DNA from: Klebsormidium nitens
Lineage: Eukaryota > Plantae > Klebsormidiophyceae
Reading direction: 5' to 3'
Length of the DNA: 39,355 bases
Assembly (NCBI GenBank): GCA_000708835.1
Contig: DF236959.1
Coordinates: 1 to 39,355 of the forward strand
Shown: in pieces, positions 196 through 39,355 of the stretch
Layout: each line of letters begins with the position of its first letter
How positions within the stretch are numbered: the first letter of the stretch is position 1
The notes under the pieces: generated by a model
The model's database searches: none
What the model was told of the DNA's origin: nothing
Seen by the model: only the letters and a program-made list of their open reading frames with translations
Position numbers and translations under genes: made by a program

Positions 196-3100
196 GCAGC
201 ATCGGCGGGCCTTCGACACTTGCGCTCACGCCTGCTCCGACGAGTGAGTCGTATTTCAAGTGGTCAGCTTTGCGGTCGATGCTCCGCCTCAATGATTCCC
301 TTTTGTGCTGTTTAAGGCTGGAATTTGGGACGACGGCACGATTCGGTGCATGTAACGTAACCGCAAGCCGTTTTAGGATCCAGGACTCCCGCTCCTGCGG
401 GCAACAAATTTTACAACTGCACCGCGTCGATTGCGGTCCAGACGCTTGTGAACCCTGTCAAGCGTGCTGAGGCCATCACCTTTTCAGAAAGCCCGCGCAG
501 AAATGAAGATCTCTTCAACGAAACGCTCGCGGCTCTCCATATTTGCGGCTTTATTTAGGAACGATCCAAATGTTCCGATTTCGAAACTCGATAAGTATCG
601 AAGCCTCGAGGGCTGATCAGCGCGAGGTGGGTGCACAAATTCCTTCACAGCCTTTCAGATCTGGACGCACTGAGCCATTGGGCGTCTAACTTTTAACGGC
701 GATAAACGATTTTTGACCACGCAGTGATTTACAAATGGTGACCGGCCTTTCAGGACAATCATCCAAAATGTCTGGACTTAGCTTCCGGTGCATGGGCTTG
801 ATGCAGGTACGCTTGCGTCCATTTGGGCGGCCAAAGACGTCAGCATATTGGGCATGCCCTCGAACCCGTTGTTCCGCGTGTACTGCTCCTACACCGTGAC
901 GATCAGTGGGGCCCCCGCCACGTCACTGACGGTCTGCACGTACAACGCAACCGGTGCTCTCGTCACGTCTCCCACGGCCACTGTTCCTGGAGGGACACCA
1001 CCGACACCCACCGTCTCCTGCCCAAGTAAGAAAAGGTGCCGTTCTAGTTTTTGCACGGGATCCGCACTCGCTGTGACCCGTGCACTGAACGCGGCCGGAC
1101 CTAGATTTCCTTCTATGGGGGAAAAGCGTGGTCCTCGGCCCCCTTTTGTCGATGACTCCGGGCTTTTGTCCAGAGACTGACGGAACATCAGCCGAAAACT
1201 CAACTGCCTGAATCTAATATATCTCCAAGTCAACGCTGGCGCCTTTCCGTCTACATGTTTGTAAAAGGTACAGTGAAAGAGGAAACGAGATTCTCCTCGT
1301 GAAAACCCGATTATAGGAACTTCTGTCCAGTCTCTGCAGGCCTTTCTTCGGAACTTGGATATCCGAGAGTAGATTACAGGAACTCGCACACCCGTGGCTT
1401 CAGGATGCCAATCTGCCTGCTGTGGCATGTACTCCCAGATACTCAGCGATTTTCCGTTTCTTGTACGTCCGAGCTCCGGAAAACTATTGTTGTACTTGCG
1501 GAAAGTGACTTCTAATTTCTAATCAGCTCTCTGTTTTCAAAGAGCGAACAGGCAATCCGTAAAGCAACGAAATATCAGACAAAAGTCGAGATTCACTTGG
1601 AGAGAGATCAGTCACGCTGACTCAGAATCAGAGACTCTAGTGGTTTACGCAATCTCTCATAACTCTTCAGGGTCCCTACCGATCGTGCTTCGAGTACTGT
1701 GCAAGTTATATAAAGTTTGATGACGTGATTTGTCTTCACAGGAAGCACCGCCCCCAACTCCTGCCCAGCGTCGGTTCAGCTGAATTTTGCGCTCGCGAAC
1801 GCGAGAGCTTTCTTCCAACAGACTCTCTGCAATTACGCCGTTGCTGTATTAAGCGGGGCTTCCGCACTTTGCGCTTACGACGCGACTTGCGCGTCAAAGG
1901 CAGGAAACGCCGCCAACTGCCCAAGTGAGTGCTTCTTCGCAGTTTTGTTCCATCTTATATTAGCTGAGAGAAAGAAAAAAATTACTTTTGTGGGACTTTC
2001 TTACGGATTCATAAAACACCATACGTATATCCCACGCGTAACAGCTCATTGAAGCTGGGTCATGTTACGCGTACAAGCGGCAAGGGAAACAGTTGAATGG
2101 CAGTCGAGGGGCTAATGGATACTGTACGCGTAAGCCCTCTCAAGTACTATGTGGGGAAGCCCTCTTCTCCTCTCAGTTCGGAGTGCATTAGATCCTGGAC
2201 GTGTTGATCCCATCCTAGAAAAACGTCTTCTTGATGCTGATAGTATCCAACAAAGCGCCTAAACGCAGAAGTTTGGACTCGACGGGTCAACTTCTAATGA
2301 TCAATAGCAAGATCCTCGTGCCTCACGGATGCAGTTCCGTACGTTTCTCTTCGTGTACAATCTGGCCATACGCAGTTCGTCAAATAGATCGAGACTGCGG
2401 TTTGGCATACAGCAGTATCGGAGCGGTGCACGAAGGGTGTTTTTAGGGAGCTAGGATTTTCTCTGTTGTCCGACGTGTAGGGGATCGATGAGGGGCTCGC
2501 CTTCGGATTCCAAATCATTAGTAGTTTCATTCAGATCACTTAGTGATTGACGCAATTTCGTACTTGTGCGCAGGAAACATTAGCGGGCCCCCGACGCCTG
2601 CTCCAACTCCTGCACTGACGCTTGCTCCGACGCAGCCACTGACGGGTGAGTCGCACTTAAATGTTCAGCTTTACGGTCGAAGTTCGATCCGCCGTCTTGT
2701 GTCCCCGCTGTTTTCCTGCTCGGAAGATTGGAAGGTCGGAAGATTGGACCACTGAGGGACGGTTTGGTGTTCGCAAGCGGCCTGTAATTAGCCTTTTCAG
2801 GAGTCCCGCTCCAACGCGCAAAACCGTCGCAGATGCACCAGCTGCGGTCCGGAGGCCGGTGAGTGATGACAAGCGTGCCTTTAATACTTCTTTTTAAAAC
2901 CCGGGCCAAAACGGAGAATTCTTTGAGAGAGAAGGTCGAGGCCTTGCTAGATCATGCGGGTACATTCATCAAGGAACGACTTTGAAGTTCGGCGGACTCT
3001 GAATCAAAAAATTCTGATCAAAGATCCGAGACTTGATCGTCGCAATTTTCATTACTACTGCTCCATTCAGCGTCCGTACACCGCTCTTATCCGGGTATAC

Positions 3101-4859
3101 AGGTGCCGTCGCGGCCATATGCCCAGCCACCAATATGGAGTCGGGGTCCTTGAACGAAGTGCAGTGCGGGTACGCTGTCAACAACGGCGCGAAGGTGAAT
3201 CCGATTGGAGTGGTCGCGCTTTGTACCTACAATTCGACCGGTGTCCTCCAAATTTCTGCGCTTTTTTCTGTACCCCCACAACTAGCCGGGGCTCCACTAT
3301 ATTCTTGCCCAGGTAAGATAGAGGGTGGTTCTTTCACGTGGTGTTGACATACCCTGAAATCAGAATGCACTTGTAAATTAAACAAGTCCATGTAGTGCAA
3401 TCTGACTCCTGTAGTAGCTAGATACTCGCGAATCCTCTGAATCATTCCAGTATGTTAGAGTTGAAGGTTGCGAATCGCGGATCTTGCTCTTTGCGCCCTT
3501 GATGCTTCTCAGACCAGAACAGACTTCCGCATTGCTAAGCATTCTCACACTATCAAAACCTGACTAGAGGACTGTTTCCGATTGTTGTTACAAAATCGCT
3601 CTGCTCCCTGCAAGAGATCTTCGCTCCTTGGAAGTCTTCTAACCTATTGCCATGTTGCCAAACGCAACACTTGTTCGGCAGCAGTCTGATCCGAATTCAA
3701 TCTGAAACAGCCGTCCGAAGTCTCGCTTGATCAATTTAGTGATCAGCTAAGTAGCGGAAGATCCCGATCAAACCAATTTGAAATCAGATGCACCTGCATA
3801 CAAACTGACAGCTGAGGAGAAGCTCACTCGGAAGAGCACGCGCATTCAACGCACTCGGCATGCCCGCCCTGCTGTCTCCGCGCCCACTCATGGGGGCTGC
3901 GTAGACAGTAAGCGGTCTGTACCGAAACCACAATAGTTTCACCGTGCCTCCTCCTTGCAGGAAGCACACCGATCCCCAACTCCTGCCCCGCCAATCCGCC
4001 GTTCGAAACACTAGTCGCTTTTGCTCGTCGCGTCAATGTATCATTGAACGCCGGAAGCCTCACCAGCTTCCAATGCATTTACTACACTGCGGCCGGAGAA
4101 TTCCAGGGGACCTGTACCTACGGGCCAGATCGCGTTCTGCTGTATTCTAGTGGAACTGTCGGACAACCATCGCCCTTCTTTACCGGCTGTTTTCGTGAGC
4201 GAGCGTGGGAACCCACCTATGTGACAAGCTTTCTGGTATGCAAATGCATCGTCCGGCTGAAGACTAACATGTGTTGAATGATAAAGTCGACCGCTGATTG
4301 GCGCCAATCCCGCGATGCACGTTTGATATCAGGACGGATGTTAAAATTCTGGTTTTCTTAGTGGCGTTGAAACCGAGATCAGCGGCTTTGGAAATGGACC
4401 ACAGAACCAGTTTGCCAGCCGTTTCTTTCTCCTTTGGCATACTTGTCAGAAAGCGTCTTGAAAGCCGACTTAAGCTCAACCAACGTTTGATTTGGAATGC
4501 CCAATTGCTGATGTGCTGAAGTCGAACCTTTCAGTGATTCTTGGGACGAAGATGCTTGTCAAAACACCGCAATTCCCTCCGATCCCCTCTGAGCCAGCCA
4601 GATGGAAAGGCTAGGTTCTGAACTTTCAAGACTAGTCAGCGGTGATTGCGAGTCAGCGGTTTGTCTTTGTGGGCAATGAATGACTAGTCATACTGTTTGA
4701 GTCAGCGGTTTGTCTTTGTGGGCAATGAATGACTAGTAGTCATACTGTTTGAGTCAGCGGTTTGTCTTTGTGGGCAATGAATGACTAGTCATACTGTTTG
4801 AGTCTGCCAGCCAGCGTTTATTTGGGTTACTTGCCTGGGTCGCAGCACTGAAGCTGTAA
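196..4859 (+). CDS. Cys-rich modular protein, paralogue 1 (5'-partial): Pro/Thr linker L - 4-Cys domain A - domain B - linker L - domain C - domain D - short tail; unknown family
   Basis: Exons with AG/GT borders, all phase 1-1 and multiples of 3: 196-243 (GSIGGPSTLALTPAPT), 807-1025 (..RVYCSY..TVCTYNATG..SCP), 1742-1924 (..NSCP..LCNY..LCAYDAT..NCP), 2574-2645 (GNISGPPTPAPTPALTLAPTQPLT), 3103-3312 (..ICP..QCGY..LCTYNSTG..SCP), 3961-4194 (..NSCP..QCIY..TCTYG..GCF). Probable terminal exon 4846-4859 (PLKL*). Open frame throughout, and every exon has a paralogue at 8403-13859. Bases 1-195 resemble the intron that follows B-type exons, so the gene starts upstream of the window. Confidence 0.8.
2331..2563. 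mobile_element. Candidate ~209 bp insertion flanked by a degenerate 12-bp target-site duplication, in intron of paralogue 1
   Basis: gcagttccgtac (2331-2342) and gcaatttcgtac (2552-2563) match at 10/12. The homologous introns (ending 195, 9939, 11435) have a single copy of this site and lack the intervening DNA. No TIR or poly(A) seen. Confidence 0.45.
4650..4804. repeat. Intronic tandem repeat, 3 x 49 bp (middle unit 52 bp)
   Basis: Unit gagtcagcggtttgtctttgtgggcaatgaatgactagtcatactgttt at 4650-4698, 4699-4750 (+3 bp) and 4751-4799. Single copy in the paralogous intron near 13750-13800. Confidence 0.95.
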
Positions 4860-7492
4860 AACCACTTGACTTCTGAGGATCATGAAACCGCTTCGAGCAG
4901 TCGGGGCCGAGGTGCTGCAATGGAAGATGTAGTAAAAGGCTTTTAATCTGTCAATTAGTCACGGGTCTCGTGCTTTGCAATCCACGCTTTCCGCTTGTGC
5001 TTACTGTCAGCTCACTTCCGGACTTCGATGCAGCAAGCAGCGAACCCGTGCCCTAGACAAATCCGAGCCCGAGTCCAACAGGTAAGCCACACGTGAACCT
5101 CGCTTTTTGGTCGACCGTCGAACCATCTCATTTCTCTCAAAATTGGCGAAGACCTCTACATTGAAAATACAAAAGAGTGCTCGTCAAGCTTGCTGAGCCT
5201 AGAAATTAAATTGCACAAATTGCACGAAGCTGATCCCAGAGCGGTGCACAAAACCTTTGCAGCTACGAATCCATCCGGTGTGTTCGTCTTGACTCCCATG
5301 CATGTAACTATTCGCTTGCCACCCTGTACTACTCTCAGAGCATCGATTTTCTTTCGCGCAGTTGGTCCGCTGATTGATATTAGACTAGCTAGCTAGCTCA
5401 CTTCAGAGAGGCAAAGTAGAGTCTGCCAATCTGCCAACACCATGTGAAGTACAGAGATTTAAGACGTGGCAGCCTAGACTTAGAGCCACGCACTTCGTTC
5501 AAACGATTGAAAGAGTAAATCCATAGTGGACCCAGAAGAGGACGCTTTTCCGTCCGTTCAAGCTTTTAGGCCATTCAAGCTTTTAGGCCATGTAACAATC
5601 CTGTAAATAGTCTTCGTCGCCTGTAATGTGAGACGTAAATACGGTCGCAAACAGTACTTACGGGTTCCTCAAAGTAGTCATTGAACGGAACTTCAAGTCC
5701 AACATATAGCTCTTCCGGTCCAGAGACTATCAAGCATGCCTAGCGCTTTGTGTGCGATCTCTCTATGTGGGTTTGAACGCATTTGTAAAACAGTTGGTCA
5801 TGTGTTGACTGTGCTTCTACGATATAGTGGCTACCATTGGTTCCGAAGCGACTTGCATTGGCGCCCGACGAGATCCGTATGTTTGCACCCATCTAGGCTA
5901 GCTGCGCCCGGCTGAAAAGGGCGGTAAAGCAACTGGAAGGCACTATTTTGACGACGTAAATTTAAGTTCTCTCTGCAAAGTGGAACTAAGAGGTCCATCG
6001 GGATATCGAGGAACAGCCATCGATCCTTACGAGGCGCCGGTTGGAACAGCTCCGAATCGTTTCCGCTACAATTGTACTGCGTATGTGGCAGGCCAGCTAG
6101 CGACTCCGTTAAGTAGAAGTAAAAGACCAGGCCGTCAGCACGGCGTCACAGTGCTGAGCGCGCGCGAGCACGCCCACGAGGTGGTCACCGGCCTACCGCG
6201 CTTCGGCGCGAGGTCGCGCGCGCGCTGAAAAAGCAGTCCTGCGACCGACTTCATCTCCTCTTCACGTTCTTGCAACCGTGGTGCGAGAGATAGCACCGAT
6301 GAGAAGGAGCTCGCGCAGCTACTTGCAGTTCTGCCACCTTCCGTTGGTCGAGAAGAGAGCCAGCTCTAAGTAGCTGGACGTTCGGACGTTCATCCGCTCC
6401 TGCGCACGTGCGTAATGGACAGCGTATACCTGGGCGGATTATGTCGATTGCCACGACACGTGTCAAGCTCGGAGGACCCGGACAGGTAGTAGAGCCTCGA
6501 TCTGGAGACCGAGGCTCGGTTCCGACGGCGGGCGTTCGACTGCCCAACGTCGAAAAGCAGATGTAAGAGAAATACGCCACTAGCTTTCAGGGCGAGAATC
6601 TAATCGCGCCTAGACGTTCAAACTGGCCGTCAGGGCGATCGCCTACGTAATGACAATAAGCTCCACGGAACAGGCTTCTTTTTATTGGCAGCGCATACCG
6701 GACGCGGCGAAGGGTGTTACGTACATATCTTCAGATTCCGGATCCGACGGTCTTTCATTCGAAGTCTCAGCAAATGAAGCCTCGGATTAAGCTGTAGGTA
6801 CGACGTACCGCCAATGATGACGTCACCTCAAGTAAAAACAAACCGAAAGCGACTCTAATGGAAAGAACGGCAAGGCCTCCAAGTTCTGTTGGGGGTTGCA
6901 TCAATCCCCTTTGAGAACTGACGATCCTCGAGGCCAAAATTCGACGGAGCTCGAGATTGTAAAACGAAGTAACAATCCTTGCAGCCGGGCAAGGAGAATG
7001 GACTGCATAAGGCAATGTTGTAAGCCGCAACGAAAGCTTAATGCCGCCCAGATCAGATGTCAATGGATATATCGCCGGGTGCTGTTTCTTCGTAGCTGTA
7101 ACACGTCTGCGTCTCTCTTGAGGAGAAGCACAGCACCCATGATTTGAATGCCTCGGGGTCGAGCGCACGTTAAAGTTTCGCGACAAACTTTCTTGGATCG
7201 ATCCGAGGACGCAAACGCCGCAAACGTCTCGTAGACTGAGTACGAGAGGTTGGGCTTTCAAACGGCTTGAAAAGCGTCATGCACAGAAGTTCTTCCGTCG
7301 AGTCATGATGATTGCAGCCCTCATTATGAAGACTTGAGAAAGTTATGTACAGTCTGGCATAAGCTCAAATTGAAAGACTACCTTCTCTACGTTTCACTTC
7401 CTAATTCTATCACATTCTTTCTGAGCCTTTTAAGCTTGCGAGGTGCCACCGACGTCCTATCCGGTCTGCACTTGCGCAACCTTCTCGCAGAA

Positions 7493-10400
7493 ATGGCGGT
7501 CAATTCGTCCCTTCTTGGCTTCCTTGGTCTACTCTGCATCGTTCTACAGATTGCTGAGGTAAGGAAGCGCGTACGTTGGTGGCAATGACAAGCAGTTCTG
7601 TGTTTTGGAAGGAAAGAGGACGTACTTCTGACGCTTGTAACTTGTGCCTAACTTTGGCTTCTTTTAAGCTTATGTGCTTGCTCTCATTATTCGCTTTTCT
7701 GTACAGCCGGAATCGTAAATCTCCGTTCCAAGTGACTCACGCATGCAAGCTGACAGACTGATCTTGATTCTGTCTCAGCAAAGGGGTTGGACACTTCAAA
7801 GTTCAATTGTGAATGCTTTGGTAGAATATTGTTATACCTATATGGGCCACCGGCCCCAGACATCTATTTCTTGCAGCTCATTTATGAGCTTCTTCCGAAA
7901 CCCCCGTGTTACCCGAGTAGGAGTTATTTGAGACCCCAGAAGCTACTCCGAAAAGGGGCTACCACGGCTGACACTCGTAAGAAGGGATGAAACTCGTGAA
8001 CTCTGCCATGATATGCAACCGGTTCGACTTCGACGTCATAGTTGATTGCTTATGGTTTTCCCCGGTCCTTACAGAAGACACAATCAGGAAGCACAGACAC
8101 GTTTGCGCTTACACGCATTCAGGTTCTTGCAACCCCTTTGGGGAAGGACTCCGGTTCCGTCGTCCCGGTCACGGAACTCCAATTCCGTGGAGAGACTACC
8201 GCAGTCGCCCACCGGAAGCTGATGCAGACTTTGTCACCAACGCAGACGCTAGGTGGGTGCACACCGAGCTTTACAACCTTCAAATCTGGATCCAGCTAAG
8301 CGACCCACTGCCTTTGAGAATGATCAAAAAAGATCTGCTGCTTTCAAGAGTGAATTTTAATTGTCAAATCTGGTGAATATAAATCTCGTTAGGCGTGTGC
8401 AGGTACGTCGTTTGCGTCTCTCTGCGCGCCTATTGACCAGTTCAAGAACCCGCTGACCCGCGTGTACTGCTCCTACAACGTGTCGATCGGCGGTGCCCCC
8501 TTCATGTCACTGACGGTCTGCACGTACAACGCAACCGGTGCTCTACTAGTTGCTGGGCTAGTCACGGTTCCCCCGGCCACTAGTATCCGAGGCTTCACAG
8601 AGATTCTACCAACAGAACCCGTCTCCTGCCCGGGTGAGGAAACGCGCCGTTCCAGTTTTGCAAAAAATCTGGCTGAACTCCGTTTTGACCCATGTTGCGA
8701 AGGCGGCCGGACCGGCCCTATTCTCCACTCTGGCAAGACGACCTAGATCGGGCGTCCATCAAAGAGGAGAAAGCCGAGGCCCGCCCTTGAACCCCAGATA
8801 AACAAGAAGTCCGGAAGGTTGGATGACAGGGCATCAAGCATGGAACATAATTTGGAAACTAAATCGTGAAACTTTGAAGTCCACGTTGGATCTTTTCAGT
8901 CCACCCAGAAATTGTGGAAGGTACACTGGGATTAGGGGAATCCAATCTTGCTCAAGTAAACTGGACGTTTGATTTTCTAAAGTAGCTGCAAGGCTGTCTC
9001 ACGATTTTTTGAAGTCGCCAGGCGGTTGACCAGGATCCCGCAAAGCCGTAGCTCTTTCAATCACTTCTAGAGCGGTCTGTAAAAGAAGCTTCTGTATATT
9101 TGAGCTTTGTTCACTCCTTTATGGTTTTTTCTCCGGCTACTAACACCCTCTCAAGTTGAAAACTATCAATGGATTTCAATGTTGGAGAGCGGACACGATA
9201 TGGTTTGGATCTCTCAGATATCTTGGTGATCAACCCTGACTATCTAGATATCTCCTATTCTGCTCAGAATACCGATGCATAATTCTGCGAATAATGCGCT
9301 CATTTGAACGAAGTAAAGTGGCATCCGATAATTGCAGGGAGCACCTTCCCCAACTCTTGCCCCGCGTCGCTTCAGCCTAACTTTGCGGACGCGAGCGCTT
9401 TCTACCAGCAGAATATCTGCGTGTACGCCGTAGCCGCATCAAACACGACTACTCCCCTTTGTGCTTACGATGCGACTGGCGCGTCAACCGGGATAAACGG
9501 CCGCAATTGCCCAAGTGAGCGCTGCTCCTTAATGCAAAGGGCCTTGATGTCAGCTCCATTGAATCGTTTTTCTTTTCTAAGGAGAAAGAGATTATGTGAC
9601 TCTCTTACAGATTCATAAAACCTCCAGAAATGACATCCCAGATTATCAAGTCGCTAGTATGTCAAATCTATGTCCAATCGAGCGCGAATGGAAACGATTG
9701 AAGGCCAGCACAAATGGCTGACTGAATACCATACGGGGGAAGCCGTCGGACTGCATTGGACCCTGAAATTGATGGCATTCTTCTTATTCAAGGTCGTTCT
9801 GGTCTCGTTCTAGAAAACGTTCTCTTTGATGCTGGGGTATGTCCAACGAAGAGCCTGAAACCTTAAAAGGGATCAACGGCGTTCATCAACGGCCGGATTC
9901 TCGTGTCTCACAAAGGCACTTTCGTACCTATGTGCGCAGGCAGAATCGGCGGGCCCCCAACACCTGTTGCGTCCATTTGCGCGGCTAATGATAACAGTAC
10001 GCCCTCGAAGCCGCTGACCCGCGTGTACTGTTTATTCAACGTTAACACAAACGTGACGATCAGCGGTGTCCCTGCCACGCCACTAACGGTCTGCACGTAT
10101 TACGCAACCGGTGCTCTCCTCCCGTTTCCTCCGGCCACCGTTCTTGGAGTTAGCACCTGCCCAGGTGAGAAAAGGCGCCATTCTAGTTTTGTACGGGGTC
10201 AGCACTCGGTTTGACTCATGCAGTGAATGCGGCCGGACCTAGACTTCCTTCAAGAGGATAATCAGCGGGGTCCTCGGCCCCTAATAAACGATGAGTCCGG
10301 AGATTGACGCGGAATCAGCAAAGATATGACTGACTGAAACTAAAAAATCTAGAAGTCAACGCTCGGCGCCTTTCCGTCTACCTGAATTGTAAAAGGTCCA

Positions 10401-13400
10401 GTAGACGAGGAATCAAAAGAAGTTTTCTCAGAAGGAACAGTTTGTGGTCAAGTTGCAGTTCAACCTGTGGCAGAATCACAAAGACTCAACGCTTTCAAGT
10501 TTCCGCTTCTTTTAGGTATGAGATCCAGGAAAGCTACTGTTGTGATTACAAACTTTAAACCAGCTCTCACGTTTCGACTAGCGGACACGCAATCGGTAAA
10601 GCGACGAAACCCGACAAACGTTGGAGATTCAGTCCAAGAGATTGAGTTAGACTGAGTCAGAGACTCTAATTTTACGAGATCCTCGTAAGCTTCCAGGGTC
10701 CCTACTAAGCGTGTTGCGAGAAGTGTGCTTAAAATGTAAAGTTCAATGATGTTATCTCTCTTCACAGGAAGCACCGCCCCCAACACTTGCCCCGCGTCGG
10801 TTCAGCAGACCGCCTCTGCGAACGCGAGAGCTTTCTTCCAGCAGACTATCTGCCTGTACGGAAACATTGCAAGCGGGACTTCCTCTTTTTGCTTTTACAA
10901 CGCGACTAGCGCGCCAATCGCAGGAAACGCCGCCAACTGCCCAAGTGAGTGCTTCTTCTTAAATGAATAGGGCCTAAATTTGATTCCATCTTTAAATTAT
11001 AGCCAGAAGCAAATGAGATTACTGGACATTCTTGCAGGTTCCTAAATACCATGATATATCCCATATGTAGCACGTCTCTATGTAAGCTGGTTCGAGTTAC
11101 GCATACGGACGCAACGGGAAACACTTGAAGGCCAGTCTGAGGGGCTATTGAATCATATGTTGTGTATGCGAATCAGCCCTCTCAAGTACTATACATATGG
11201 GTAAGCCCTCTCAAGTTTATAATGCACTAGACCCTGGATGCCATCAGAAGAAGACAATCCTTTTCTTCCTGTCCTTCTTTCGTTCTGTCGTTCTGCACGT
11301 TTCGTCCTAGAAAAAGATCTTCTTCATGCTGAGGTATCCAACAAGAGCGCCTAACCCCAGAAACTTGGACGGGTCAACATCGATCAACAGCAGAACTACT
11401 GTGCCTCACGAATGCAATTGTGTATCTGTGCGCAGAAACAATCGGCGGGCCCTCGACGCCTGCTCCAACACCTGCGCTGACGCCTGCTCCGACGCCACTG
11501 ACGAGTGAGTCGCACTTCAAGTGACCAGTCAGCTTTGCGGTCTACGCCCCGCTACTTTGGGCTCTCTTTCTAGCTATTTAAGGTCGGAAGATTGGACGAC
11601 TGAGTCACGGTTTGGTGACGTTGGCAACCGTAAGCCTTGTCATGAGGAGTCCCGCTCCAACGCGCAAACTCGTCACAGATGCAATGCGCCAGCCTGCGGT
11701 CCGGAGGCCGGTGAGTCCCCAGTGTGCCTAGTTTCTTCGTAAACTCCGGGCGGAAATGAGATCTTTTCAAGGGACGGTTCAAGGCTCGCTAAATAGATTG
11801 CGGCAACATAAGGAACGATAGGAGGCCCCCTTCCTCCCCTCCCGTTGACGCGATTAGTGTTGATTCGTAGCCACAGAACTTCAAATATACATTGAGATTG
11901 GCCATCTAGATAAAAAAGTTGATAGATAAATAATCTTATGTATTGACGCTGTTGTTATTGCTAGGAATCGAACGCTTGATCGTTAGGTGAGGACCCGTAG
12001 TTAAATCCGTCCCAACACATGTACACTTATTCTTTGCCCTCTGGGCCATACCGAAAGAAACCATTCCGATTTCGACTCTGGACAGGTGATCGGGCGTAAT
12101 ACAGTAATTGCTGCTTCGATCAGCGTCCTTACGCCGTTATCACTCCGGTATGCAGGTGCCATCGCGGCCAAATGCCAAGCCACCGATATGTTGCAGTCGG
12201 GTTTTTTAGGGTATGTGGAGTGCGAGTACGGCGTGTTTACCGCCGTATACGTGAATCCAATTGGAGCGATCGTGACTTGTCCCTACGATTCAACCGGTGG
12301 CCTCTTGAGTCCTTCGCTTTCTCAAGTTTCCCCAGAACTGAAAGGGGCTACAGCGTCCGGCTGCCCAGGTAACAAAGAGGGTGATTCTTTGACTTGGCGA
12401 TGACATACCGCTGAATTCTCAATGCAAAAAGGAGCCCATCTACTGCAATCTGACTCCTGTAGTAGCCCTGTAGTAGCTACCGTCGCAAACCCTATAAATC
12501 CGATTCCAGTATAGTGGAGTTGAAGGATGCAAATCTCGAATCTTCCTTTTGCGCCCTTGATGCCTCTCAATATGTCAATAGTGACGCATTTTCCCCTCGT
12601 TGATAAATAAAAACCAAGATTTAAATCATCACTAGAGGACTGTTTCCGATATTTGTTGAAGTGATCGTTTAACCAATTTTTATTTCGTAACTGCGACGTC
12701 CACTTGTATTGGCAGCAGTCTGATCCAAAGCCAATCTGAAACAGCCGTTCCGAGGTCTCGCTTGGCTACATTGGCCATCACTTAAGTAGCAGAATCCCGT
12801 TCACTCGAATTGAACTGAGCTGCATCTGCATACAAACCGGAGAGGCCACAGCTGATTTAAGAAGAAACTCGGAAAATTCAACCGAAAGAGCACGACGCAT
12901 TCGCACCCCGCATGACCGCATGCCCGCCCTCCCTTTCCACCGGCCCCCTTATGGGGGCTAAGAAGGTGCCAAGCGGTGTGTCGCGAAACCAAAATAGTCT
13001 CGCCGTGCCTCCTTATTGCAGGAAGAGCACCTCCGTCCTCATGCCCCGCCAGTCCGCCGTTCGAAGCATTGGTTGGGTTTGCTCGTGTCAGGAACATTTC
13101 ATTGATTGCCCGATCGGACAGCCTCAATACCTTTCGGTGCTCCTACTACAACCAGATCGGGGCGATGCTGGGAACCTGTAGCAACCGGCCAGACGGCGTT
13201 CTGTTTGGTTCTATCCGGCGTCCAACCGGACAGTTTTATCCCGGCTGTTATGGTGAGCGCCCGTGGGCACTTTCCTGGGTGAAAAGGTTTTGAAAGCGAC
13301 CGTATCGTTCTTGAACGGGGGGCTAAAGACTAAAAGTTCCTTGAATGATGAAATTGACCGCTGATTGGTGTCAATCCATGATGCGCTTACTATCAGGTAG

Positions 13401-13859
13401 GACATCAGAAGTCTTGCTTTTGGAGTGGCGTCTAGTCCGGGATCAGCGGCTTTGGAATCAAAGGAGCACAGAATCACGTTGCAAGCCGTTTCGTGGCCGT
13501 TTCTTTCTTCTTTGGCATACTTGTCAGGGAGCATCTTAGAATCCGACTTTGGCTCAGCCAACACTTGAATCCAAACGTCTTGCTGAATGATGAATCTGCT
13601 GAAGTCGCAAAAAATAACGAAGCTTCAATTGACCCCTGAGACTAAGATGCATCGTCAAAACACCGCAAAACTCACCGATCCCCCCTATGCCAGCCCAGAC
13701 GGAAAAGCTAGGTTCTCCTAGGTTCTGGACACTATTAAGCGGTGATTGACAATCAGCGGTTTGTCTCTGTGGCCAATGAATGGCTAGTCGTACTGTTTGA
13801 GTCTGCCAGCCAGAGGTTTATATGGAATATTTACCTGGTTCACAGCGGTAAAGCCGTAA
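7493..13859 (+). CDS. Cys-rich modular secreted protein, paralogue 2 (predicted 500 aa): signal peptide - A - B - fused L+A - B - L - C - D - tail; unknown family
   Basis: Predicted exons: 7493-7558 (MAVNSSLLGFLGLLCIVLQIAE, hydrophobic signal-like, donor GAG|GTAAGG), 7877-7976 (phase 0 to 1, less certain), 8403-8633, 9338-9514, 9940-10164, 10768-10944, 11436-11504, 12156-12368, 13022-13252, 13846-13859 (AVKP*). Lengths sum to 1503 nt with no internal stop. Each domain exon has 4 Cys. Confidence 0.8.
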
Positions 13860-15480
13860 AACCATTTACTTGAGGAGAAATTTGAAGGACCGCTTTGAGC
13901 AGTCGGGGCCGAGTGCCTGGCACTGGAAGATAAAGTAGAAGGCTTCCAATGTCCCAATCACCCACGGCTCTCGCTCTGCGATCCACGTCGTCCGATTCTT
14001 GTGCTTACGGTCACTTCACTTCCGGACTTCAATGCAGCAAAAAGCATTGCCGTGCGGCCCTAGACAAACTCAAGCCCTAGGAATAGGTGAGCCACACTGA
14101 AAACCTCGCTTTGTAGTCGACCGTCAAAGCATCTCAGTTCGCTCAGAATTGGCGTAGGCCTCTACAAACATACAAACGAGTGCTTTGTCAACCTTGCCCA
14201 GCCAAGAAATCAAATTGCACAAAACCAGCTCTCGGCTGCAAAGGTTCTTTGCAGCTACGATTCCGACCATTGGCAGTGGGTGTGTTCCTCTCGACTCCCA
14301 TGCATACTTTTCGCTTGCCCTCAAGTGCCCTCAAAACATTGATTTTCTTCTCAGTGCGCAGGTGGTCCGCTGATTGGTATCTGACTCGCTAGCTCACGAC
14401 ACAGAGTCGAGGGAGAGTCGGTCATCATCATGTGACGTATAGAACGTTAAGCCGTGGCCGCAGAGACTTGACCCAAGGCTATGCACTCTCTAAGAATATC
14501 ATTGCAATCCATCGTGGAAGGTTGTAGTGGATCCGACCAAAACAAAACACTTTTTCGCTCGATCGACCTGGCTTAAGTTAAGCTTAGGCCACGGTCGTGA
14601 TCAGGCTTGTACAAAGAAGATTCCTTGCCTAGGTACGGTGCCTTGAGTACACATTAACTAGTAAAGTTTGCAAACGGTAGCAATATATGTTGGGCATATT
14701 GAAGAGATATAAATTGGCCCCACGAAAGGAACCGTCGCTTGGAACGATCGAAGAATAGTCGGACAAACTGGAGTGCCAGGCCATGCACTGCGTCATGTGC
14801 TTTAATTTAGAGTTCAATGCAAGGATGTCAATTCCGAAGTTCTATGAACAATTCCTGCATATGCCAGGCGACCGTCGGACTCAAGTCGGATCGACTCAAT
14901 GACATGCTTGCATACTTGACTTGCGCGACCGCATATCAAGTGTTGCATACACAAAGGACTGATCGAGTCACTCAATTTCCGCGCGCAACGGTCTTGGTGC
15001 ATATCATATCTAACCTAAGTTCCGAAGTTCAAGCACACGTCAGGCTCAGAAACTTGTATCATGTGTTCACTTGTAGGTATGCTAGAGGTCGAGTTCCGCT
15101 GCCATCTGCGGCTAATACGCTCCAGCTAATCTATCGCCATTCTAGAAGGCCGTGGCATCCGATCGACCCCAGGCCCGTCGAGCTAATTTACCGTACTTCG
15201 AAGCGACAGATTTTGTAGTATATACAAATATCTGCTTGATGGCAGATTGTAGTTGTTGCATGCCGCGCTGCTCACGAGAACCATTGACCGGTATGGCGGG
15301 GCACCGTTCAATTAGAACGTTACTTGAGTACACGCCAAGCACGGCGCCAATGAAGCAGAGAAAATATCGTAGAAACTATGCGGGCGAGCACACTTCGGAT
15401 ACATCCTGTCACGCATCCAAAGCAGATAGACAAAGCCAGCACTGATCCTTCTCCATAAGTCGATATGGGCCAGATAGAAT

Positions 15481-21400: not shown

Positions 21401-24400
21401 CGAACTGCAGCGGCACGGCTTCCGCCGCCTCTAGTTCCGCTTCCTTCCGCTGCCGTCCTTCCGCTTCTTCCATCGTAAAGGCACCGTAACCGCTTTCTAC
21501 AACCTCCTCTAATGGAGAGCTTTTGGCCCCGTTTCGCGAGAGCGACGTTTCGTGTAAGCTCATCCCGTTCGAGAACCCATTTTCCCCATCGTTTGAACCA
21601 TCAACAGCCGTGTCCGATGCTAACTCTACTATATTCTTTTTACTCGCGCTTGCTGTTACTGAAACACGCCCGGATGCAACCGAATCAGAACCATTTACAG
21701 CAAAAGGCCGATCCGCTTCAGCTTCCAATCCCTCCTCAGCTCCCATATTCACTCTCGTTCCCGCTTCTAGAGCACTTTCATTGGTCAGATCTTTGGACCC
21801 CATCCCTCCCTCCCCGTCTATACTTACTTGATCTGGGCCCAATACCGCCTCCCTTCCACTCCCCTCTGACTGAACCCATCGAACGTCCAGCCCCTGTTCT
21901 CGAAACACCTCGCCCGCACTTTCTCCTTCCGCTGCCGTTCCGTTCCCCTGAACCAAGGCAGGTTCCGCCCTCACATCTCCCTCTCTTATGTGGACTGCTG
22001 AAGCGCCTTCATCTAGTATTTCACTTTCAGTGGGCTCTCCGTGAGTACCCGTTGACTTGAGTGGAGGGGGGGGTCGCGAGGCGGCCGCGGCGCGTTCTCT
22101 CCGCGCCGTAACCTCAGCGGGGATGTTGGCAGTCGCGCGATCGATGTGCGGTTGCAGCTTTTCGTACAGGTCGGCCAAACCCTGCGAAAGGGTGTTGGGT
22201 TTTGAAACTGCAAATTCGGGTGAAATTGAAAGCAGCTGAATTCTGGTGCGCTCGCAAAGGTCAGACAGTGCTCAGATCATTTTGACACCATTTCATCAAG
22301 ATGCAAACGCAGACTTCTCCGCTCTCCATGCTGATTGCCAATGCTTCCCCAAACTACCCCTTCCCTATCGCTGCCAGCACATATTTCGCCTGGAAAAAAG
22401 CGTCTTAAACCCTAAAGCTTCTCAAGTCATCGACCTCCACAAATTGCAAATGTCCAACTTCCCGCTTTCTGCACTGACGGCCACTCTACGGAGGCCCACA
22501 CGGCCACAATAGCCTGCGCGTAGACCGCCAGACAACCAACTCCCCAGCCCCAAAAACCATGAGATCTCGTTAAGTTGCGATTGCCCAGCTCCCCACTCTC
22601 CGCACCGACGGCCACTGCCTCGCCAACCCCACTCGTTATGCTTCTCCCATGGCCGCCTGCAAGTACCTAGTCCGCCTGCCAGCAGACTTTCCGATATTTA
22701 AAAACTCCTTGAGACATTTGAATTTGCTTGTAAGTGTTCAACGAAAGTGCAGAATCCCACCTCGCCGCTCTCTGTGCTAGATGGCCATCGCCTCCCCAAA
22801 CTCCACTTGGTACGCCTCCCCCACCGCCGTCAGCACATACTTCGCCTGGCAACAAAGCTCCTAAACCCCAAGAAAGACTTTGAATGATAGACATTATGGA
22901 CGTGCGAAGGCCCACCTCGCCGCTCTCTGCGCTGATGGCCACTGCCTCCCCAAACCCCACTTGGTACGCCTCCCCCATCGCCGCCAGCACGTAGTCGGCT
23001 TGGCGGTTGCCCCCCTCGCACTTGTTGGCCGCAAGAATGACCGGCAGCCGGGTCTGGCAGCGGAGCCAGCGCGCGAGCTCGATGTCCATTGGCTGGACCT
23101 GGAAAAGTCAATTTTGGGTCAGCGTTTTGGTTAAGCGTTCCAAGTTACGTTCCTCAATCCTTCGAGATCGTGCGACTTTATTCTCTGTGAGCAAATTCAA
23201 GTCAAAGCACCGAGGTTATTGGCAGCTGGGTTTGAGGCCGCAGCCACCGCGCGAGCTCCATGTCCATTGGCTGGACCTGAGAGGGAAACTTTTGGGTCAG
23301 CGTTTGGTTGACCATTCTGAGAAAGGTCCTTGTTTTCCAATGGGAGATTCCTGTAAGCTGTTCCCAGTGGAGGCCCAATTAGATTTCTAAGTCGAGCGTA
23401 GCTCCGCAGCCACCGCCCGTGTTCGAAGTCCATTGGTTGGACCCAAGAAGGGTTAGCGCTTTGATTAGGCGTTCTGACCCTCAATAATATTGGATTGCAT
23501 ATCCCTGTGGGTTTCCAATCTACGCCCCAAAATATCGGCAGCCGAGTCTGGTGCTGCAGCAAGGGCGCGAGCTCGATGTCCACTGGCTGGACCTGAGAAA
23601 GTGAACCTGGGTTCAGCATCTTGGTTAAGCTTTCCTTAATTATGTCAGATTGTGTTGACTATTTTTTCTATAAGCGATCATGAACTACGGCCCCGAGGTG
23701 ACTGGCAGCTGGGTCTGACACCACAGCCACCGTGTGAGCTCGATATCCATCGGCTGAACCTGATAAGGTAAACTTTGACGGTCAGCGTTCGCTTGACCAT
23801 TCTGGGAGAGGCCCTTGTTTTTCTGGTGGAAGATTCGCGTCTGATAAGCTATTCCCAGTCTTGAAGGCCCGATGTCCTTTGGAAACGAGCCTGGCTCCGC
23901 AGCCACCTCGCAAGCTTGATGGCCATTGGCTGGACCTGAGAAGGCAGAATCCGAGGTCACCGTTTCGTTGAAGCCTTCGGGTTAACGTCCCTTCTTTTGA
24001 TCGGTAATCTTGAGTCAAGGCCCCTAATTGAAAATCAACCGGGTCTGGCGCCGCAGCCAGCGCGCGAGCTCAATGTCCAATGGCTGAACCTGAAGAAGTG
24101 AACTTTGGGGTCAGCGTTGGGTTGACTATTCTGGGAAGGGTCCTTGTTTTCCAACAGGGGATGCCCGTCTGGTAAGCTGTTCCCAGTGGAGGCCCGCTCT
24201 CATTTGGAAACCAAGGCCAGCTTCGCAGCCACCGCGCAGATTTGATGTTCACTGGTTGGACCCGAGAAAATAGAACCAGGGTTAGCGCTTTGGTTAGGCG
24301 TTCTGACCCTCAGTTCCTTTTGGATCGAACACCCTTGTGGTTCCTATTAACGTCGGGGTCTGGCGCCGAAGCCAGCGCGCGAGCTCGATGTCCGACGACT

Positions 24401-26696
24401 GGACCTGAGAAGATGAATTTTGGCGTCAGTCGTTTTGGCTACGCCTTTGAGTGACTTTCGACAGGATCGATCTGTGTTGGATCCCCCTTCTAAAAAGTGC
24501 TACAAGGGCGATATTTACAGTGCGATTGGACCAGGGCTTGCGCCAGATCGTCACGCGGCTTGAAAGGACCCCTGGATGAGTTGTCTAAGATACCTCAGCG
24601 GATTTGTATCCCAAACCTTTTGGTTTTGGTTTTACTCGGGGCTGTTGCTTAGCATGTCGCCAGCACTCCCAAACGAAATGCAGATAAGTCCGATGCGGCA
24701 GCCACAGTACGAGGTCCACATCTGAGAAATCTTGTACTAAGTCAGCGCTTTGGGTTGGTTCTGGGTGGTCCATCTCAAAGTTATTTCGCTGCCTCTCTAG
24801 ACCAATTGTTCCACTTGATCACATCACTTTGTTTGGGCTTAGGTTGTTTCATTGTCTCTGCTTTTATACGCAGGTGCTTCAAATTGGCCACCCTGATTAC
24901 GGGACGCAATCTACATAAGTCGTTCAAAAACACAAGCCAGGTGGCAAGGCGTTTCAAAGGAACAGAAGCCTAGAAGGCACGGCAGCTATAGAGGACAAAG
25001 TCAGTTTTTGGTAGCACGACTGACAGTTCTGCAGAAGCTCTACTAAGAGCTCCGGCGCAGAGAGTTTTTGAACCCTCACCCCAGCCCGTGCGTCCAGCAT
25101 GAACAACGCCAAGTGACTGCGCGTCAGCAGCTTTGCAGTCAGGGCCATCGCACGGCCCAGCAGGCTCCCCCCCTCAGAGTCGGCCTCCATCCCTGCTGTG
25201 TCAAACAGCTTAAAACGCAGGTCCGACAATTGCGCGACTCCTTCGCGATAGTCCCGAGTGACATGGCCGCCGGGGGTGTCGTAAACCTGAGAAGAGGAGA
25301 AGAAGAAAAGCACGAGATGGTCTATATCGACGCCAATGAGACTCCTTCTCATTGGCGTCGCATTGCTGACTTCTAACTCAAGCCTTATGCTTGAAACATA
25401 AGGCTTGAGTTAGAAGTCAGCAATGCTTTTTCTGTGATCTTAGCAGATGTGGCTCCCGAGGGTGGTCTAGGGCTGGGAACACGGCACCGAAGTGGAAGAC
25501 TTGAGTTGGGTGGCAGGACGAGAAACTGTTTTCGCGAAGCTGCTGCGAGCTTGGGAAGCTTCAAGCTATTCCTATATACCAAGGATGCGAGCAGAATGTA
25601 CAAGGAGCTATCAGCATCTTAAGCAACACGGAAAGCAGGTCATGCAGACTATATGGGTGCAATAAAGTGCGCCTTCTGAAAATATTCACAGAGAGACATA
25701 GTTCAAACTCTGCACAACTGCACAACCACAGTTTAGTGTCGCTTGTGCCCCCCGCTGAGAGGGCTTGAAAAGGTACTTGATTTCAAGTGTCAAAGCATAA
25801 ATTCACAAAGACAGTGTTGAGACGTCATCAGAATTCTGTAAGAACCGATTCCCATGCCACGATTTCCATAGAGAAGTGACCCTCATAAGAATGTTTTTTT
25901 GATATCATCACTGGGTGCTTCACCCCCAACGCGCCTGTGCAACTTTCGTGAAAGCAACCATACACTAAGCGCACCACCAATAACCTCGGACTTAATGTGC
26001 ACATTTTAGCACCACCAGTTTGCAGACGGTGTAAATGTCCATAGAGTTTAAGGAACCTTTGCGCAAGTTTACACGCACTTTTAAATGTTGTTCATCCTCA
26101 GTGAGGCCCACAAAAATGTCACCTTCATCACCACCACCACCACCATCATCCTCATTTGGCGCTTTGCCTTTGTCAAACGCCACCACAGCTGACAGCTACA
26201 AGATCTTCCTCAAATAGGGCCTCAGAGGGCGGGGACTTTCACAGCCATAAGCTTCTGACCAGATGCGCTTACACACGCAGCTGACAATCAATACCCTCTG
26301 CGTAGATATTACACAGAATACGTTGCCACAACTCAGGGAATAAAGTTCTCTCAGAATGAGCTCCCAGGTTTCATGATGCTTCTTCAGTCTCACCAGTGCT
26401 TCTTTCCGCCTCACAAGCCGGTTGTAAAGTGCTGACTTCCCTACATTGGGCCTTCCAACAAGAACCACGCTTGGCAGTAGGGCCTGATCCTCGTCTCGCA
26501 CTGTCTTTGGCTGTTTCTTCTTCGTATCTTTCTGAACGGGCTTCTTCGAGGAGCTGTTGACCTCTTTAATGTGTGACGGTGGTCGCTTTGAGGACAGCAG
26601 ACGGGTGGCGGAAATTAATTGCAAAGCCTGTGAGGGAACGTGGGGCCTAAACAGGAGTTTGCAAACCTTGTCAAGGGGTAAGCGGAGCATTGTCAT
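15481..26696 (-). CDS. der: EngA/Der double-GTPase ribosome biogenesis factor, organellar (probably mitochondrial type), 13 exons, predicted 768 aa
   Basis: Exons (minus strand): 26696-26394 (GRPNVGKSALYNRL, G1), 25286-25080 (TRD, DTAG), 23098-22916 (ANKCE; AISAESG), 22181-21363 (GRPNVGKSTL, second G1), 20864-20757 (GLTRDS), 20232-20107 (VDTAG), 19528-19448 (EEGRAL), 18889-18797 (VNKID), 17924-17856 (LSALKG), 17376-17308 (INRWL), 16848-16789 (RYITQ), 16281-16190 (KARPPTF), 15577-15481 (GVPIRM..*). Two complete GTPase motif sets plus KH-like C-terminus, and phases are consistent at every junction. Confidence 0.93.
22315..22845 (-). repeat. Four degenerate tandem copies of the 3' half of Der exon 3 plus donor region (in intron 3)
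   Basis: Copies of 'ADYVLAAMGEAYQVGFGEAVAISAESGE|gt' end at 22761 (GT kept, 1-nt insertion gives TAG), 22589 (donor CT, stops), 22458 (donor TT) and 22315 (GT kept, TAG). Confidence 0.85.
23099..24420 (-). repeat. Eight tandem copies of the acceptor plus first ~19 codons of Der exon 3 (in intron 2), unit 143-178 bp
   Basis: Copy starts at 23276, 23442, 23592, 23759, 23935, 24089, 24261 and 24404, each translating as a VQPxDxELARWLRxQTxL variant. CAG acceptor intact in six; TGG at 23442 and CGG at 24261. Confidence 0.93.
25328..25426. repeat. Two abutting perfect inverted repeats (13-bp and 30-bp stems, each with a 7-nt loop) in Der intron 1
   Basis: cgacgccaatgag (25328-25340) pairs with ctcattggcgtcg (25348-25360). 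gcattgctgacttctaactcaagccttatg (25360-25389) pairs with cataaggcttgagttagaagtcagcaatgc (25397-25426). Confidence 0.95.
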
Positions 26697-30200: not shown

Positions 30201-33200
30201 CCGAAATACGATAGGCTTATTTCTTTTAGAATAAGGTTGGTTACACTTTGAACTTAATAGATTAATGCTATAGACAAGAGTTTGTTGCGCTGAGTCCACC
30301 CCCCAAGACCCCTTGCAGGCGCGAGAGAGGCCGCACGACTGACCTTGAAACAAAATAGCTCCGTTTGCTTACATCAAAGCTTCTGCTGTGTCCAGCCGCA
30401 GATAACAGCGCGACCAACGCTTAACGCCACGGTCCTCAAATTGCGAACTTGTGATACTTTGGACCAACATTTGTTTCCAATCAACAGGCGCGGCTATTCC
30501 GTGGAGCGCGAGAGCGGGCGCATGACTGGCCCCAAGACGGACTACCTCCAGTCGGTGTTCCTGCAGAGCCTCTTCCAGGGCGCGGTGCGCCCGCTGTACG
30601 AAGTCGGCACCAAGATCCGGAAGACGTACCAGGCGGTGTCGAACGATAAGAACATTCGGCCGGTGCTACGCAAGGTCGAGCGGTGGCTGGGAGAGCCGCT
30701 GCCGGTGGAAGGAGAGGGCGAAGGAGAGGGCGAGATTGCGGGGTGAGAAGTTCTGAAATTTATGTTCTTTTGAGCATTATGGGTTCTGGACTGAGAGCTA
30801 AACAAGTCTTTCGGGGGTTGATGACATCACATGGTCGAGCGGTGGCTGGGAGAGTCGTTGCCACTGGAGGGAGAGGACGAAGGAGAGGGCGAGGTTGCCG
30901 GGTTGGCAGTTTTGACGCTTTCTGGGGTTGAGCTTTTGGGGTTCCGAACGCTGCGGGGGCATAACTTTGAGTTTTGAGCTGTTTATGTTTTGAAATTACG
31001 AGATTCTTGTCCAATTGGGAGCTACTCCTGGTGTGAAGAGACTGGGACGCAAGGGGGTGGGATCGAGGCGAGACGGGAGTGGGGTTGGTTTGAGGTTTCT
31101 GAAGGCCGTCAGAGACATGTTTTGCGGTCTGGAAAAGGTTAGCTGCAATTTGCTAGCGCCCTCAATTTCGCGTTGGCTCGCAATTGCCGCATCGAGCCTT
31201 TCGAACGCCTGTTTCGAGGCTTGAGAGGCTTTTCTTTTCTTCCGCTCCCTGCTTGCCCAGTTCGTGTCTTGTTATTGATGGAATGAAACAGCGAGTGTGA
31301 TTCTGGAATCACGATTGCAATTCCTTATCTTCCATTGGACCGGTCGCTGTCACCATTTCCCGGGACTCCAAGGTTGGCGCTCGAGCCAGCGATCCCTCAC
31401 TCACAATGAACCCACGCGTGCCATTTCCAACCTGACATGGGGCACCCGTTTCCCCAGCGCCGCCGTCACCAAGGCTCGCAACGGCCAGGTCACCGTCCCC
31501 CGTTACGAGGCCTTCCTCTCGTCGGCTGGCTCCCAAATCTGCAAAGTCGGTACATTTGCCATGCTTTACTCACAACTCTACCAATCGTAAATTGACGCGT
31601 GGCTTCTGGTTGCGCAGCCCCGCCGTTACCGAGGCCCGGAACGGCCCTGTCACGGTCCCCCGTTACGAGGCCTTCCTTTCATCGGCTGGCTCCCGGGGTT
31701 TGCTCATCAAGAAGTTGCTCATCAGCCTGGGCCTTGTTCCGGAGGAGAGGGACAAGCTGGCGGACTTAGCGGAGGAGATTGCGAGGCGAGAAGCGGAGCT
31801 CAGGTACAGAATGTTATCAGCCTTTGCTTTTCCCTTTTCGGGAGCTCTCATTCAGTCTTGCGATGGAGCAGTCCCTTTCATCTTTTCTGAAAATGATGTC
31901 TCCTACTCGGAAACTGTACGTATCTCGACAGAAATCGTCGATTTGTTTGGAACAGAGGGGCTCCGCCGGGTCTCTCTTAGGAAAGAGATAGTGACGCCAA
32001 AGATTGGCACTCCATGACGCAAGTTAATATGTCCTCCGACTGCTTCACACGCTGGATCATAAATCTGAATTTTTAGGAACTCTTTGTCACGTTAACAGGC
32101 ATCTCATTGCGAAGTGCATCAAGGCTTTACATCCCGTCGCTAACCTTCACCCCCTGCCAAGCTGACCTACTCTTCACTCCATTCTCCAGCCCCCGTTACG
32201 TCAGCCGCGTCTCGATGCAAGACGTCTTCCGCCCGTCCCTGGAGAATGTCTCTGGGGGCAGCCTCTGGGACCGGGTTAAGGCGTCCGCCGGGGTTATGTT
32301 CGCCCAAACCACCCTTCTCGAGCCCGCTTACCGGGAGATGGTTATCTTGTACACGCCAAAACCCTCGGACAGCAAACCCACTCTCTGGCAACGCTGGGTC
32401 CGGCGTCCGAAAAACGCGCTGCAGCGGCGGTTTAGGAGGGAGGTCGCCGAGGGGGGGTCGGATGACGGGCAGGATGAAGGGGGGGAAGTGGGGGACGAGG
32501 GGAAGTTGCAGCTGAACATGTATAAGGACATTCCGATCCCGGAGCTGAAGGTGGTGTTCCCGGACAAGAAGCTGTCGTACCGGCTGCTAGACACGGTGAG
32601 GATTAAGACTCTGGGTTACTGGGCTGTCGTGGTCTGACGTTACGAGGTTCACAGCGCGTTTTTAAGGCCGACGAGGAAGTGAGCAATGAAGGAAGCATCC
32701 CTTGAACCAAAGCGGGACGAATTTGAAGACAGGACTTGGAGTGTGACATTGTCGGACGAGAAGCCGTCTCGCCTCAACACGGGGAATGGCACTGTTCAGC
32801 AAAGCTTCACGATCGGGTTCGACAGTTGATCAGAGTATAAAAGACCAATTGAATTTTGAGGCTGATATTCTTCAGGTTGGAAAATATGAAGCATTGGCAC
32901 CTCACGCTGGACAGAGGGAATAAGGGGATGGACGGCTCAAGGCAAACCCATTCTACGTCACTGTCTAACACCTCTTAGGGGCAATCTCCATACGCGGAGT
33001 TTTTAGCGCTAGCTAAGTACGGTAATTTCTCTGAGGATCGGTTATCCTGCCAAACGCAGTAACCAGCTCTGACCCTCGTTGATTTTGTCTTTAACCGCAG
33101 GTTCGGCTTGACTTAACCACCATCTTGGGTATACTCGCCTTCGGGCTGCAATACCGCTTCGACGACCTCAACTCCATGTAAGCAGTTTTGGCTTGCAGCG

Positions 33201-39203: not shown

Positions 39204-39355
39204 CTGGTAGACAATCACATGTTGCAAACAACACAATGGCACGAGCGTCTCTCAAAGGCGCCTTCTTCCTTCCTTCATGCTTTTCTGATTATGATATCGA
39301 TCATGTTCCTCCTGCTCAAGTCTATAGTCTCACTTCACTCTACAGACTGAGCCTT

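Follow-up and report, generated by a model that had tools for sequence, protein, structure and literature searches.

Secreted proteins assembled from small modules, each on a symmetric exon with phase-1 borders, are described as mainly an animal trait and a minor one in plants, and frame-keeping exon skipping likewise as an animal trait that is not enriched in plants (PMC6335736). Among secreted plant peptides, processing by site-1 protease is known for RALF (PMC12605736), and proteases of this type are present throughout the Archaeplastida (PMC6713707). Here we describe two paralogous genes arranged in tandem at the beginning of scaffold DF236959.1 of the terrestrial alga Klebsormidium nitens (assembly GCA_000708835.1), i.e. 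KFL_000100010 (gene 1) and KFL_000100020 (gene 2), both annotated as hypothetical, within a stretch of 39,355 nucleotides (positions 1 to 39,355 of the forward strand, hereafter the window). Both genes consist of repeated four-cysteine modules without a name, family or structure in the databases searched, each on its own phase-1 exon; given that this is an animal-type trait and minor in plants, the architecture is notable. What is new here is the pairing rule that the modules follow, together with diversifying selection on one of their two classes.

Module exons and the alpha-beta pair

A preliminary description of this DNA had listed ten exons with a common frame of four Cys and two CxY motifs, one module filling each symmetric phase-1 exon, and we could confirm this by checking starts, borders, phases and Cys counts. 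Across positions 196-13859, all ten module exons start as claimed (807, 1742, 3103, 3961, 8403, 9338, 9940, 10768, 12156 and 13022), have AG/GT borders and a length of 177-234 nt that is divisible by three, and are open in phase 1-1; the encoded modules measure 55-77 residues and end in C-P/F/Y. All ten modules share the second, third and fourth Cys (C2, C3 and C4), and nine of them also have the first (C1). The departures are a Trp at C1 in exon 807, which is left with three Cys, a fifth Cys in exon 1742, a CxF in exon 9940 and a CxN at one CxY of exon 13022. As a control, introns were mapped by hand in two genes nearby, one for a DUF3754 protein and one for an EngA/Der GTPase; of the 17 introns so mapped, none is in phase 1. 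An alternative reading with the module offset from the exon borders was rejected on Cys count, the linker-bounded units of eight Cys being split 4+4 at the intron.

In total, we found 31 module exons in seven genes, i.e. the two of the window and five more. A tree of 28 aligned modules separates an alpha class (types A, C and E; support 95/92) from a beta class (types B and D, which begin with PNSCP), the two classes being homologous around the second CxY (hhalign 64%, E 7e-5). The order is alpha then beta in 15 of the 15 complete units of the seven genes, without exception; as these genes are kin, the 15 pairs do not count as independent of one another, and still no unpaired duplicate has been retained. 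Linker exons occur only between a beta module and the next alpha module and never inside a pair. Strict alternation and linker placement therefore point to growth by duplication of a linker+alpha+beta cassette, and the many phase-1 introns consequently trace back to about three ancestral ones.

The duplicated unit is thus the alpha-beta pair and not a freely shuffled single exon. The module had been proposed to be shufflable. In one gene (positions 1893-4582 of the relatives' locus L002) a pair of modules is linked with another kind of terminal domain, which may bear this out in part, whereas the free movement of single exons has to be given up, since the classes alternate strictly, all 15 units are paired and no single exon was seen moving.

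Coding and diversifying selection

Entire exon and intron blocks of gene 1 and gene 2 align at 67-77%. Between the two genes, intron identity is 76.6% and gaps number 34 per kb, with 76 out of 94 having a length not divisible by three; exon identity is 74.7% and there are 12 gaps, ten of which have a length divisible by three, the remaining two compensating each other. When neutral change was simulated at rates taken from the paralogous introns, an exon remained intact in both of its copies (AG/GT borders, length 3n, open, four Cys) in only 3-8 of 10,000 runs. In addition, the proportion of non-synonymous differences (pN) is lower than that of synonymous ones (pS) in the pooled exons of gene 1 versus gene 2 (omega 0.66, P 0.013), as well as in the C and D exons alone (omega 0.63, P 0.03). 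Therefore, the exons, including those omitted by GenBank, have been held in frame by selection; coding selection has acted on the C and D exons too.

Averaged over whole modules, omega is 0.77 for type A, 0.94 for B, 1.09 for C, 0.55 for D and 0.62 for E. The site model resolves the B modules into about 30% of sites near omega 0 and about 23% at an omega of about 4. Comparing models M2a and M1a for the B modules gave a likelihood-ratio test (LRT) statistic of 21.2-21.6, the null maximum in 74 simulations being 5.9; the value was 18.6 when the alignment was trimmed harder and 11.4 when the most divergent copy was removed. Under the model, the Cys/Tyr/Gly core is frozen, whereas the rest of the module evolves as fast as expected under neutrality or faster. 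This indicates diversifying selection on the beta modules around a fixed Cys/Tyr core.

Layout of the two tandem genes

The span 196-13859 holds two genes, not one, and each of them runs past its last module exon; a single long gene was rejected because there is a stop exon at 5034 and, at 7493, a new signal-peptide exon, with which gene 2 begins. All exons are on the plus strand. GenBank gives KFL_000100010 as partial, 196-4014, and KFL_000100020 as 7493-11524.

Gene 1 has lost its 5' end, which precedes the scaffold start. It opens with a Pro/Thr linker exon (196-243), followed by an alpha module of type A (807-1025), a beta module of type B (1742-1924), a second Pro/Thr linker exon (2574-2645), an alpha module of type C (3103-3312), of which the GenBank model uses only the first half, and a beta module of type D (3961-4194), which is out of frame in that model. 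The final coding exon (5034-5081), homologous to 14038-14086 of gene 2, carries a short tail and the stop and is followed by a predicted intron in the 3' untranslated region. In the first pair, the Cys lost from the alpha module 807-1025 (to Trp) coincides with one gained in its beta partner 1742-1924 (Gly to Cys; the sole B module with a fifth Cys), so that the pair total is still eight; this is possibly a compensating inter-module disulfide, or chance. The last coding intron of gene 1 also contains a 49-nt unit three times (window 4650-4804), which occurs once in gene 2.

Gene 2 starts with a signal-peptide exon (7493-7558; kept in four paralogues) followed by a phase-0 intron, and a pro-segment exon of phase 0-1 (8123-8252) with the motif HRKLMQ, a likely cut site of the site-1-protease type that is identical in five genes. 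Thereafter come six modules, i.e. an alpha module of type A (8403-8633), a beta module of type B (9338-9514), a linker stub fused to an alpha module of type A (9940-10164), a beta module of type B (10768-10944) and, after a Pro/Thr linker exon (11436-11504), an alpha module of type C (12156-12368) and a beta module of type D (13022-13252). The GenBank model runs from the linker into the intron, stops at 11524 and misses both the C and the D module. The final coding exon (14038-14086) resembles that of gene 1 in its short tail, stop and predicted 3' untranslated intron. The spliced model has 514 residues, 25 Cys and eight N-glycan sequons, Pro, Thr, Ser and Ala making up 42%; by hydropathy of the joined model, no hydrophobic stretch is found beyond the signal peptide that could serve as a membrane anchor.

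Pro/Thr linkers had been claimed to have phase 1-1 exons of their own, which is the case for the three linker exons 196-243, 2574-2645 and 11436-11504 and fails for exon 9940. There, 9-222 aligns to 9749-9966 and 813-1284 to 9967-10412; therefore, an in-frame genomic deletion took out the intron and fused the linker start to the module.

The family in K. nitens

A profile hidden Markov model (HMM) built from the ten modules found six strong matches among 1.84 billion representative proteins, all of them hypothetical proteins of K. nitens. Two borderline matches of the full HMM scan (P0007 and P0008) are unrelated repeats without the four-Cys frame. Significant matches to the ten domains, whose search against protein databases had been suggested earlier, are thus confined to this species; word-based searches of 5.8 billion proteins likewise gave matches in K. 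nitens only, and no relative was found in the metagenome, viral and prokaryote contigs searched. Nor did a literature search return a paper naming the locus tags. As judged from these searches, the modules form an undescribed family that is so far restricted to K. nitens.

The relatives' loci contain 21 further module exons, i.e. 17 intact ones of phase 1-1, one whose donor is lost (L002 12048), two with frameshifts (in L001, at about 13588 and 15861) and one truncated where its contig ends. The signal-peptide exon and the RKLM exon are conserved in five genes. GenBank models of the relatives skip clear exons as well, e.g. the pro exon in L002. The gene at L002 1893-4582, with a module pair, a long Pro/Thr rod and a different Cys-rich last exon, is the sole mixed architecture, all other genes carrying only this module. 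Its terminal exon (4206-4582), behind the pair and the rod, encodes a 124-residue Cys-rich domain without a Pfam match.

L001, L002 and L003 come from scaffolds of only 6-22 kb and the two genes of the window from the beginning of one; therefore, assembly gaps may hide more copies. A 100-nt intergenic stretch of the window (6133-6236) is 77% identical to L001 19217-19322, outside the aligned gene blocks and without a match in Rfam.

Structure and searches for known families

Single modules were modelled with AlphaFold2 and searched by structure, as the preliminary description had advised. The two models, both of single alpha modules (pLDDT, the predicted local distance difference test, 60 and 65), show a three-stranded antiparallel sheet with the CxY motifs on adjacent strands. 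With low confidence, the module may thus be a small three-stranded antiparallel sheet. Since C2 lies opposite C3 in this register, the models suggest C2-C3 and C1-C4 disulfides. Fold searches with the two models returned only generic beta-meanders and propeller blades: Foldseek gave no E below 1 against the PDB, the best VIA Z values were 3.8 and 4.4 and the Atlas TM was at most 0.56.

By sequence, the family had been called unrecognised, and it stays so: no Pfam-A or NCBIfam score exceeded the curated cut-off, the best E in scans with 10 and 28 modules being 0.03-0.05 in single members with no family common to two of the 28. The best E of a sequence profile against the PDB was 1.1-1.7, which is no match; Rfam gave none either, and an Atlas feature search among unnamed clusters returned nothing. 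Three identities were rejected, i.e. Kazal (Kazal_C6 at E 0.048 with 14 bits versus a cut-off of 27, in one member only), the C-terminal segment of CAP/SCP proteins (a feature score of 0.91 on just 144 shared features, no PF00188 match and no CAP protein among the fold matches) and RALF, as neither the YISY motif nor a match to the RALF profile was found.

Probable function and alternative explanations

The proposal that the proteins are secreted agrees with the predicted signal peptide, the pro-segment, the Pro/Thr linkers and the N-glycan sequons. The product would be a soluble secreted glycoprotein, with the signal peptide and RKLM pro-segment followed by two or three alpha-beta pairs and their Pro/Thr linkers and no membrane anchor, and the genes grew by duplication of the linker+alpha+beta cassette, the phase-1 borders keeping the frame, and by whole-gene duplication. 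RKLM presumably fits an RxxL-type site-1 protease site, and the precursor may thus be cleaved there in the Golgi by a site-1-type protease; a literature search found no paper with RKLM as a cleavage site. The linkers probably carry O-glycans, and the mature protein may reside in the wall or mucilage, where several disulfide-stapled pairs would make it a multivalent binder.

A frozen core, a diversifying surface and decayed copies are typical of recognition and defence families. A fixed core with a fast surface therefore suggests binding of something variable outside the cell. The most likely target of such a secreted multivalent binder would be a variable foreign surface, to which we give a probability of roughly 45%. 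It is tempting to speculate, as the least certain step, that the ligand is a microbial surface glycan or protein and that the family serves recognition or defence with birth-and-death turnover. A more far-reaching proposal, i.e. that K. nitens evolved its own animal-style recognition family with a new disulfide fold, the alpha-beta pair, phase-1 multiplication, positive selection for recognising microbes and a module possibly of fungal origin, seems improbable to us.

Several points weigh against recognition of a foreign surface. The site model is our own GY94 implementation with a fixed tree and eight short B modules that are paralogues within a single genome, the LRT of these modules can be inflated by gene conversion or misalignment, and the A class shows only one positively selected site (P 0.012). 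In the GenBank models, the C and D exons are missing or wrongly read. In contrast to cationic antimicrobial peptides, most modules have a net charge close to zero, and, given a pLDDT of 60-65 and no fold match, the structures give no pointer to a ligand.

The proteins could instead be structural glycoproteins of wall or mucilage, which we consider rather unlikely. In that case the alpha-beta pairs would attach to polysaccharides of the alga itself or to one another, thereby cross-linking the wall or gluing filaments to the substrate, and the rapid change would reflect weak constraint outside the disulfide core. Such a role would suit the 42% of Pro/Thr/Ser/Ala and the eight N-glycan sequons of the gene 2 product, the long Pro/Thr rod of the L002 relative and the soluble multivalent layout. 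However, an omega near 4 at one in four B-module sites would be surprising for a fixed self ligand, and no known carbohydrate-binding fold was matched.

Compatible with any function, and unlikely in itself, is an origin of the module by horizontal transfer from fungi, i.e. from small secreted Cys proteins of Agaricomycetes, followed by amplification. It would account for the absence of relatives from other green plants in the profile search of 1.84 billion proteins; the motif behind it, CP..CxY..CxYxxxtGxL..CP, is presumably that of the Agaricomycete proteins, as proposed in the preliminary description, and no such protein was retrieved. Against it, no fungal protein appeared in the sequence or Atlas searches, although family members score 12-25 bits with the first profile where 35 bits are needed, and the searches are therefore blind to a remote single-module fungal relative.

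We consider it quite unlikely that this is a decaying, largely redundant repeat family in which entire genes, or else just their distal C and D exons, have fallen out of use and drift. An exon DNA identity of 74.7%, not above the 76.6% of the introns, an omega of 0.9-1.1 for C modules, the Cys lost in exon 807, the two frameshifted exons of L001, the lost donor of L002 and a GenBank model that stops ahead of C would be expected from drift. Yet frame, splice sites and Cys are intact in both C and both D copies, with P about 4e-4 each under neutrality, pooled C and D exons have pN < pS (P 0.03) and a third of the B sites are nearly invariant.

Combinatorial isoforms, i.e. many proteins per gene through regulated skipping of single module exons, are very improbable, for although all internal exons past the pro exon are 1-1, so that skipping retains the frame, and some exons are joined irregularly in GenBank models of relatives, the strict alpha-beta order suggests that the modules work in pairs, the splice sites deviate little from the consensus, a gene has at most six modules, the irregular models resemble predictor errors, and frame-keeping skipping is described as an animal trait not enriched in plants (PMC6335736), which further lowers the odds of such splicing.

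Should the positive selection be genuine, the family would be a candidate for extracellular microbe recognition in a land-dwelling alga close to the root of the land-plant line, and the alpha-beta pair, at about 125 residues, is small and easily expressed for ligand screens. If it is not, this is another lineage-specific wall protein family, and the corrected gene models are a useful result.

Other features of the window

The minus-strand EngA/Der GTPase gene has many diverged piece copies of one of its exons in both flanking introns (window 22300-24450), and a near-perfect inverted repeat of 67 nt lies in an intron of the same gene (25360-25426). In the DUF3754 gene, exon-end stretches of 80-86 nt are duplicated into the adjoining introns with 85-88% identity (30671-30915 and 31455-31694). 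Exons of a UDP-glycosyltransferase (PF00201) on the minus strand occupy 37800-39355 and run past the window end.

Comparison with known systems

Agaricomycete small secreted Cys proteins presumably share the order of four Cys and two CxY motifs with the K. nitens modules and differ by a longer C1-C2 and a shorter C2-C3 spacing than in the alpha class.

Among plant Cys peptides, RALF is similar in its signal peptide, its four-Cys mature unit and, putatively, its basic pro-site (PMC12605736). Defensin-like and NCR peptides are comparable in their lineage-restricted expansion, fixed Cys and variable surface. In contrast to all of these, the K. nitens proteins are multi-module, about 500 residues long, have Pro/Thr spacers, are not cationic and lack both YISY and a Pfam match.

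In green algae and plants, chimeric hydroxyproline-rich wall glycoproteins (pherophorin-type proteins and chimeric arabinogalactan proteins or extensins) likewise carry secreted globular modules on Pro/Thr/Ala-rich spacers, whereas the K. nitens modules are unrelated to theirs and the spacers are short (16-24 residues, the L002 relative excepted) and without Ser-Pro4 blocks.

The animal class 1-1 modules (EGF, CCP/sushi, Kazal and Ig) differ in that the K. nitens module has no sequence similarity to them and, in low-confidence models, no fold similarity, and in that its genes have a phase-0 signal-peptide intron, an obligate alpha-beta pair and only one other domain type so far, in a plant lineage where symmetric-module assembly is minor (PMC6335736). 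What they have in common is a small disulfide module on each symmetric phase-1 exon, its arrangement in tandem secreted arrays and growth by exon duplication.

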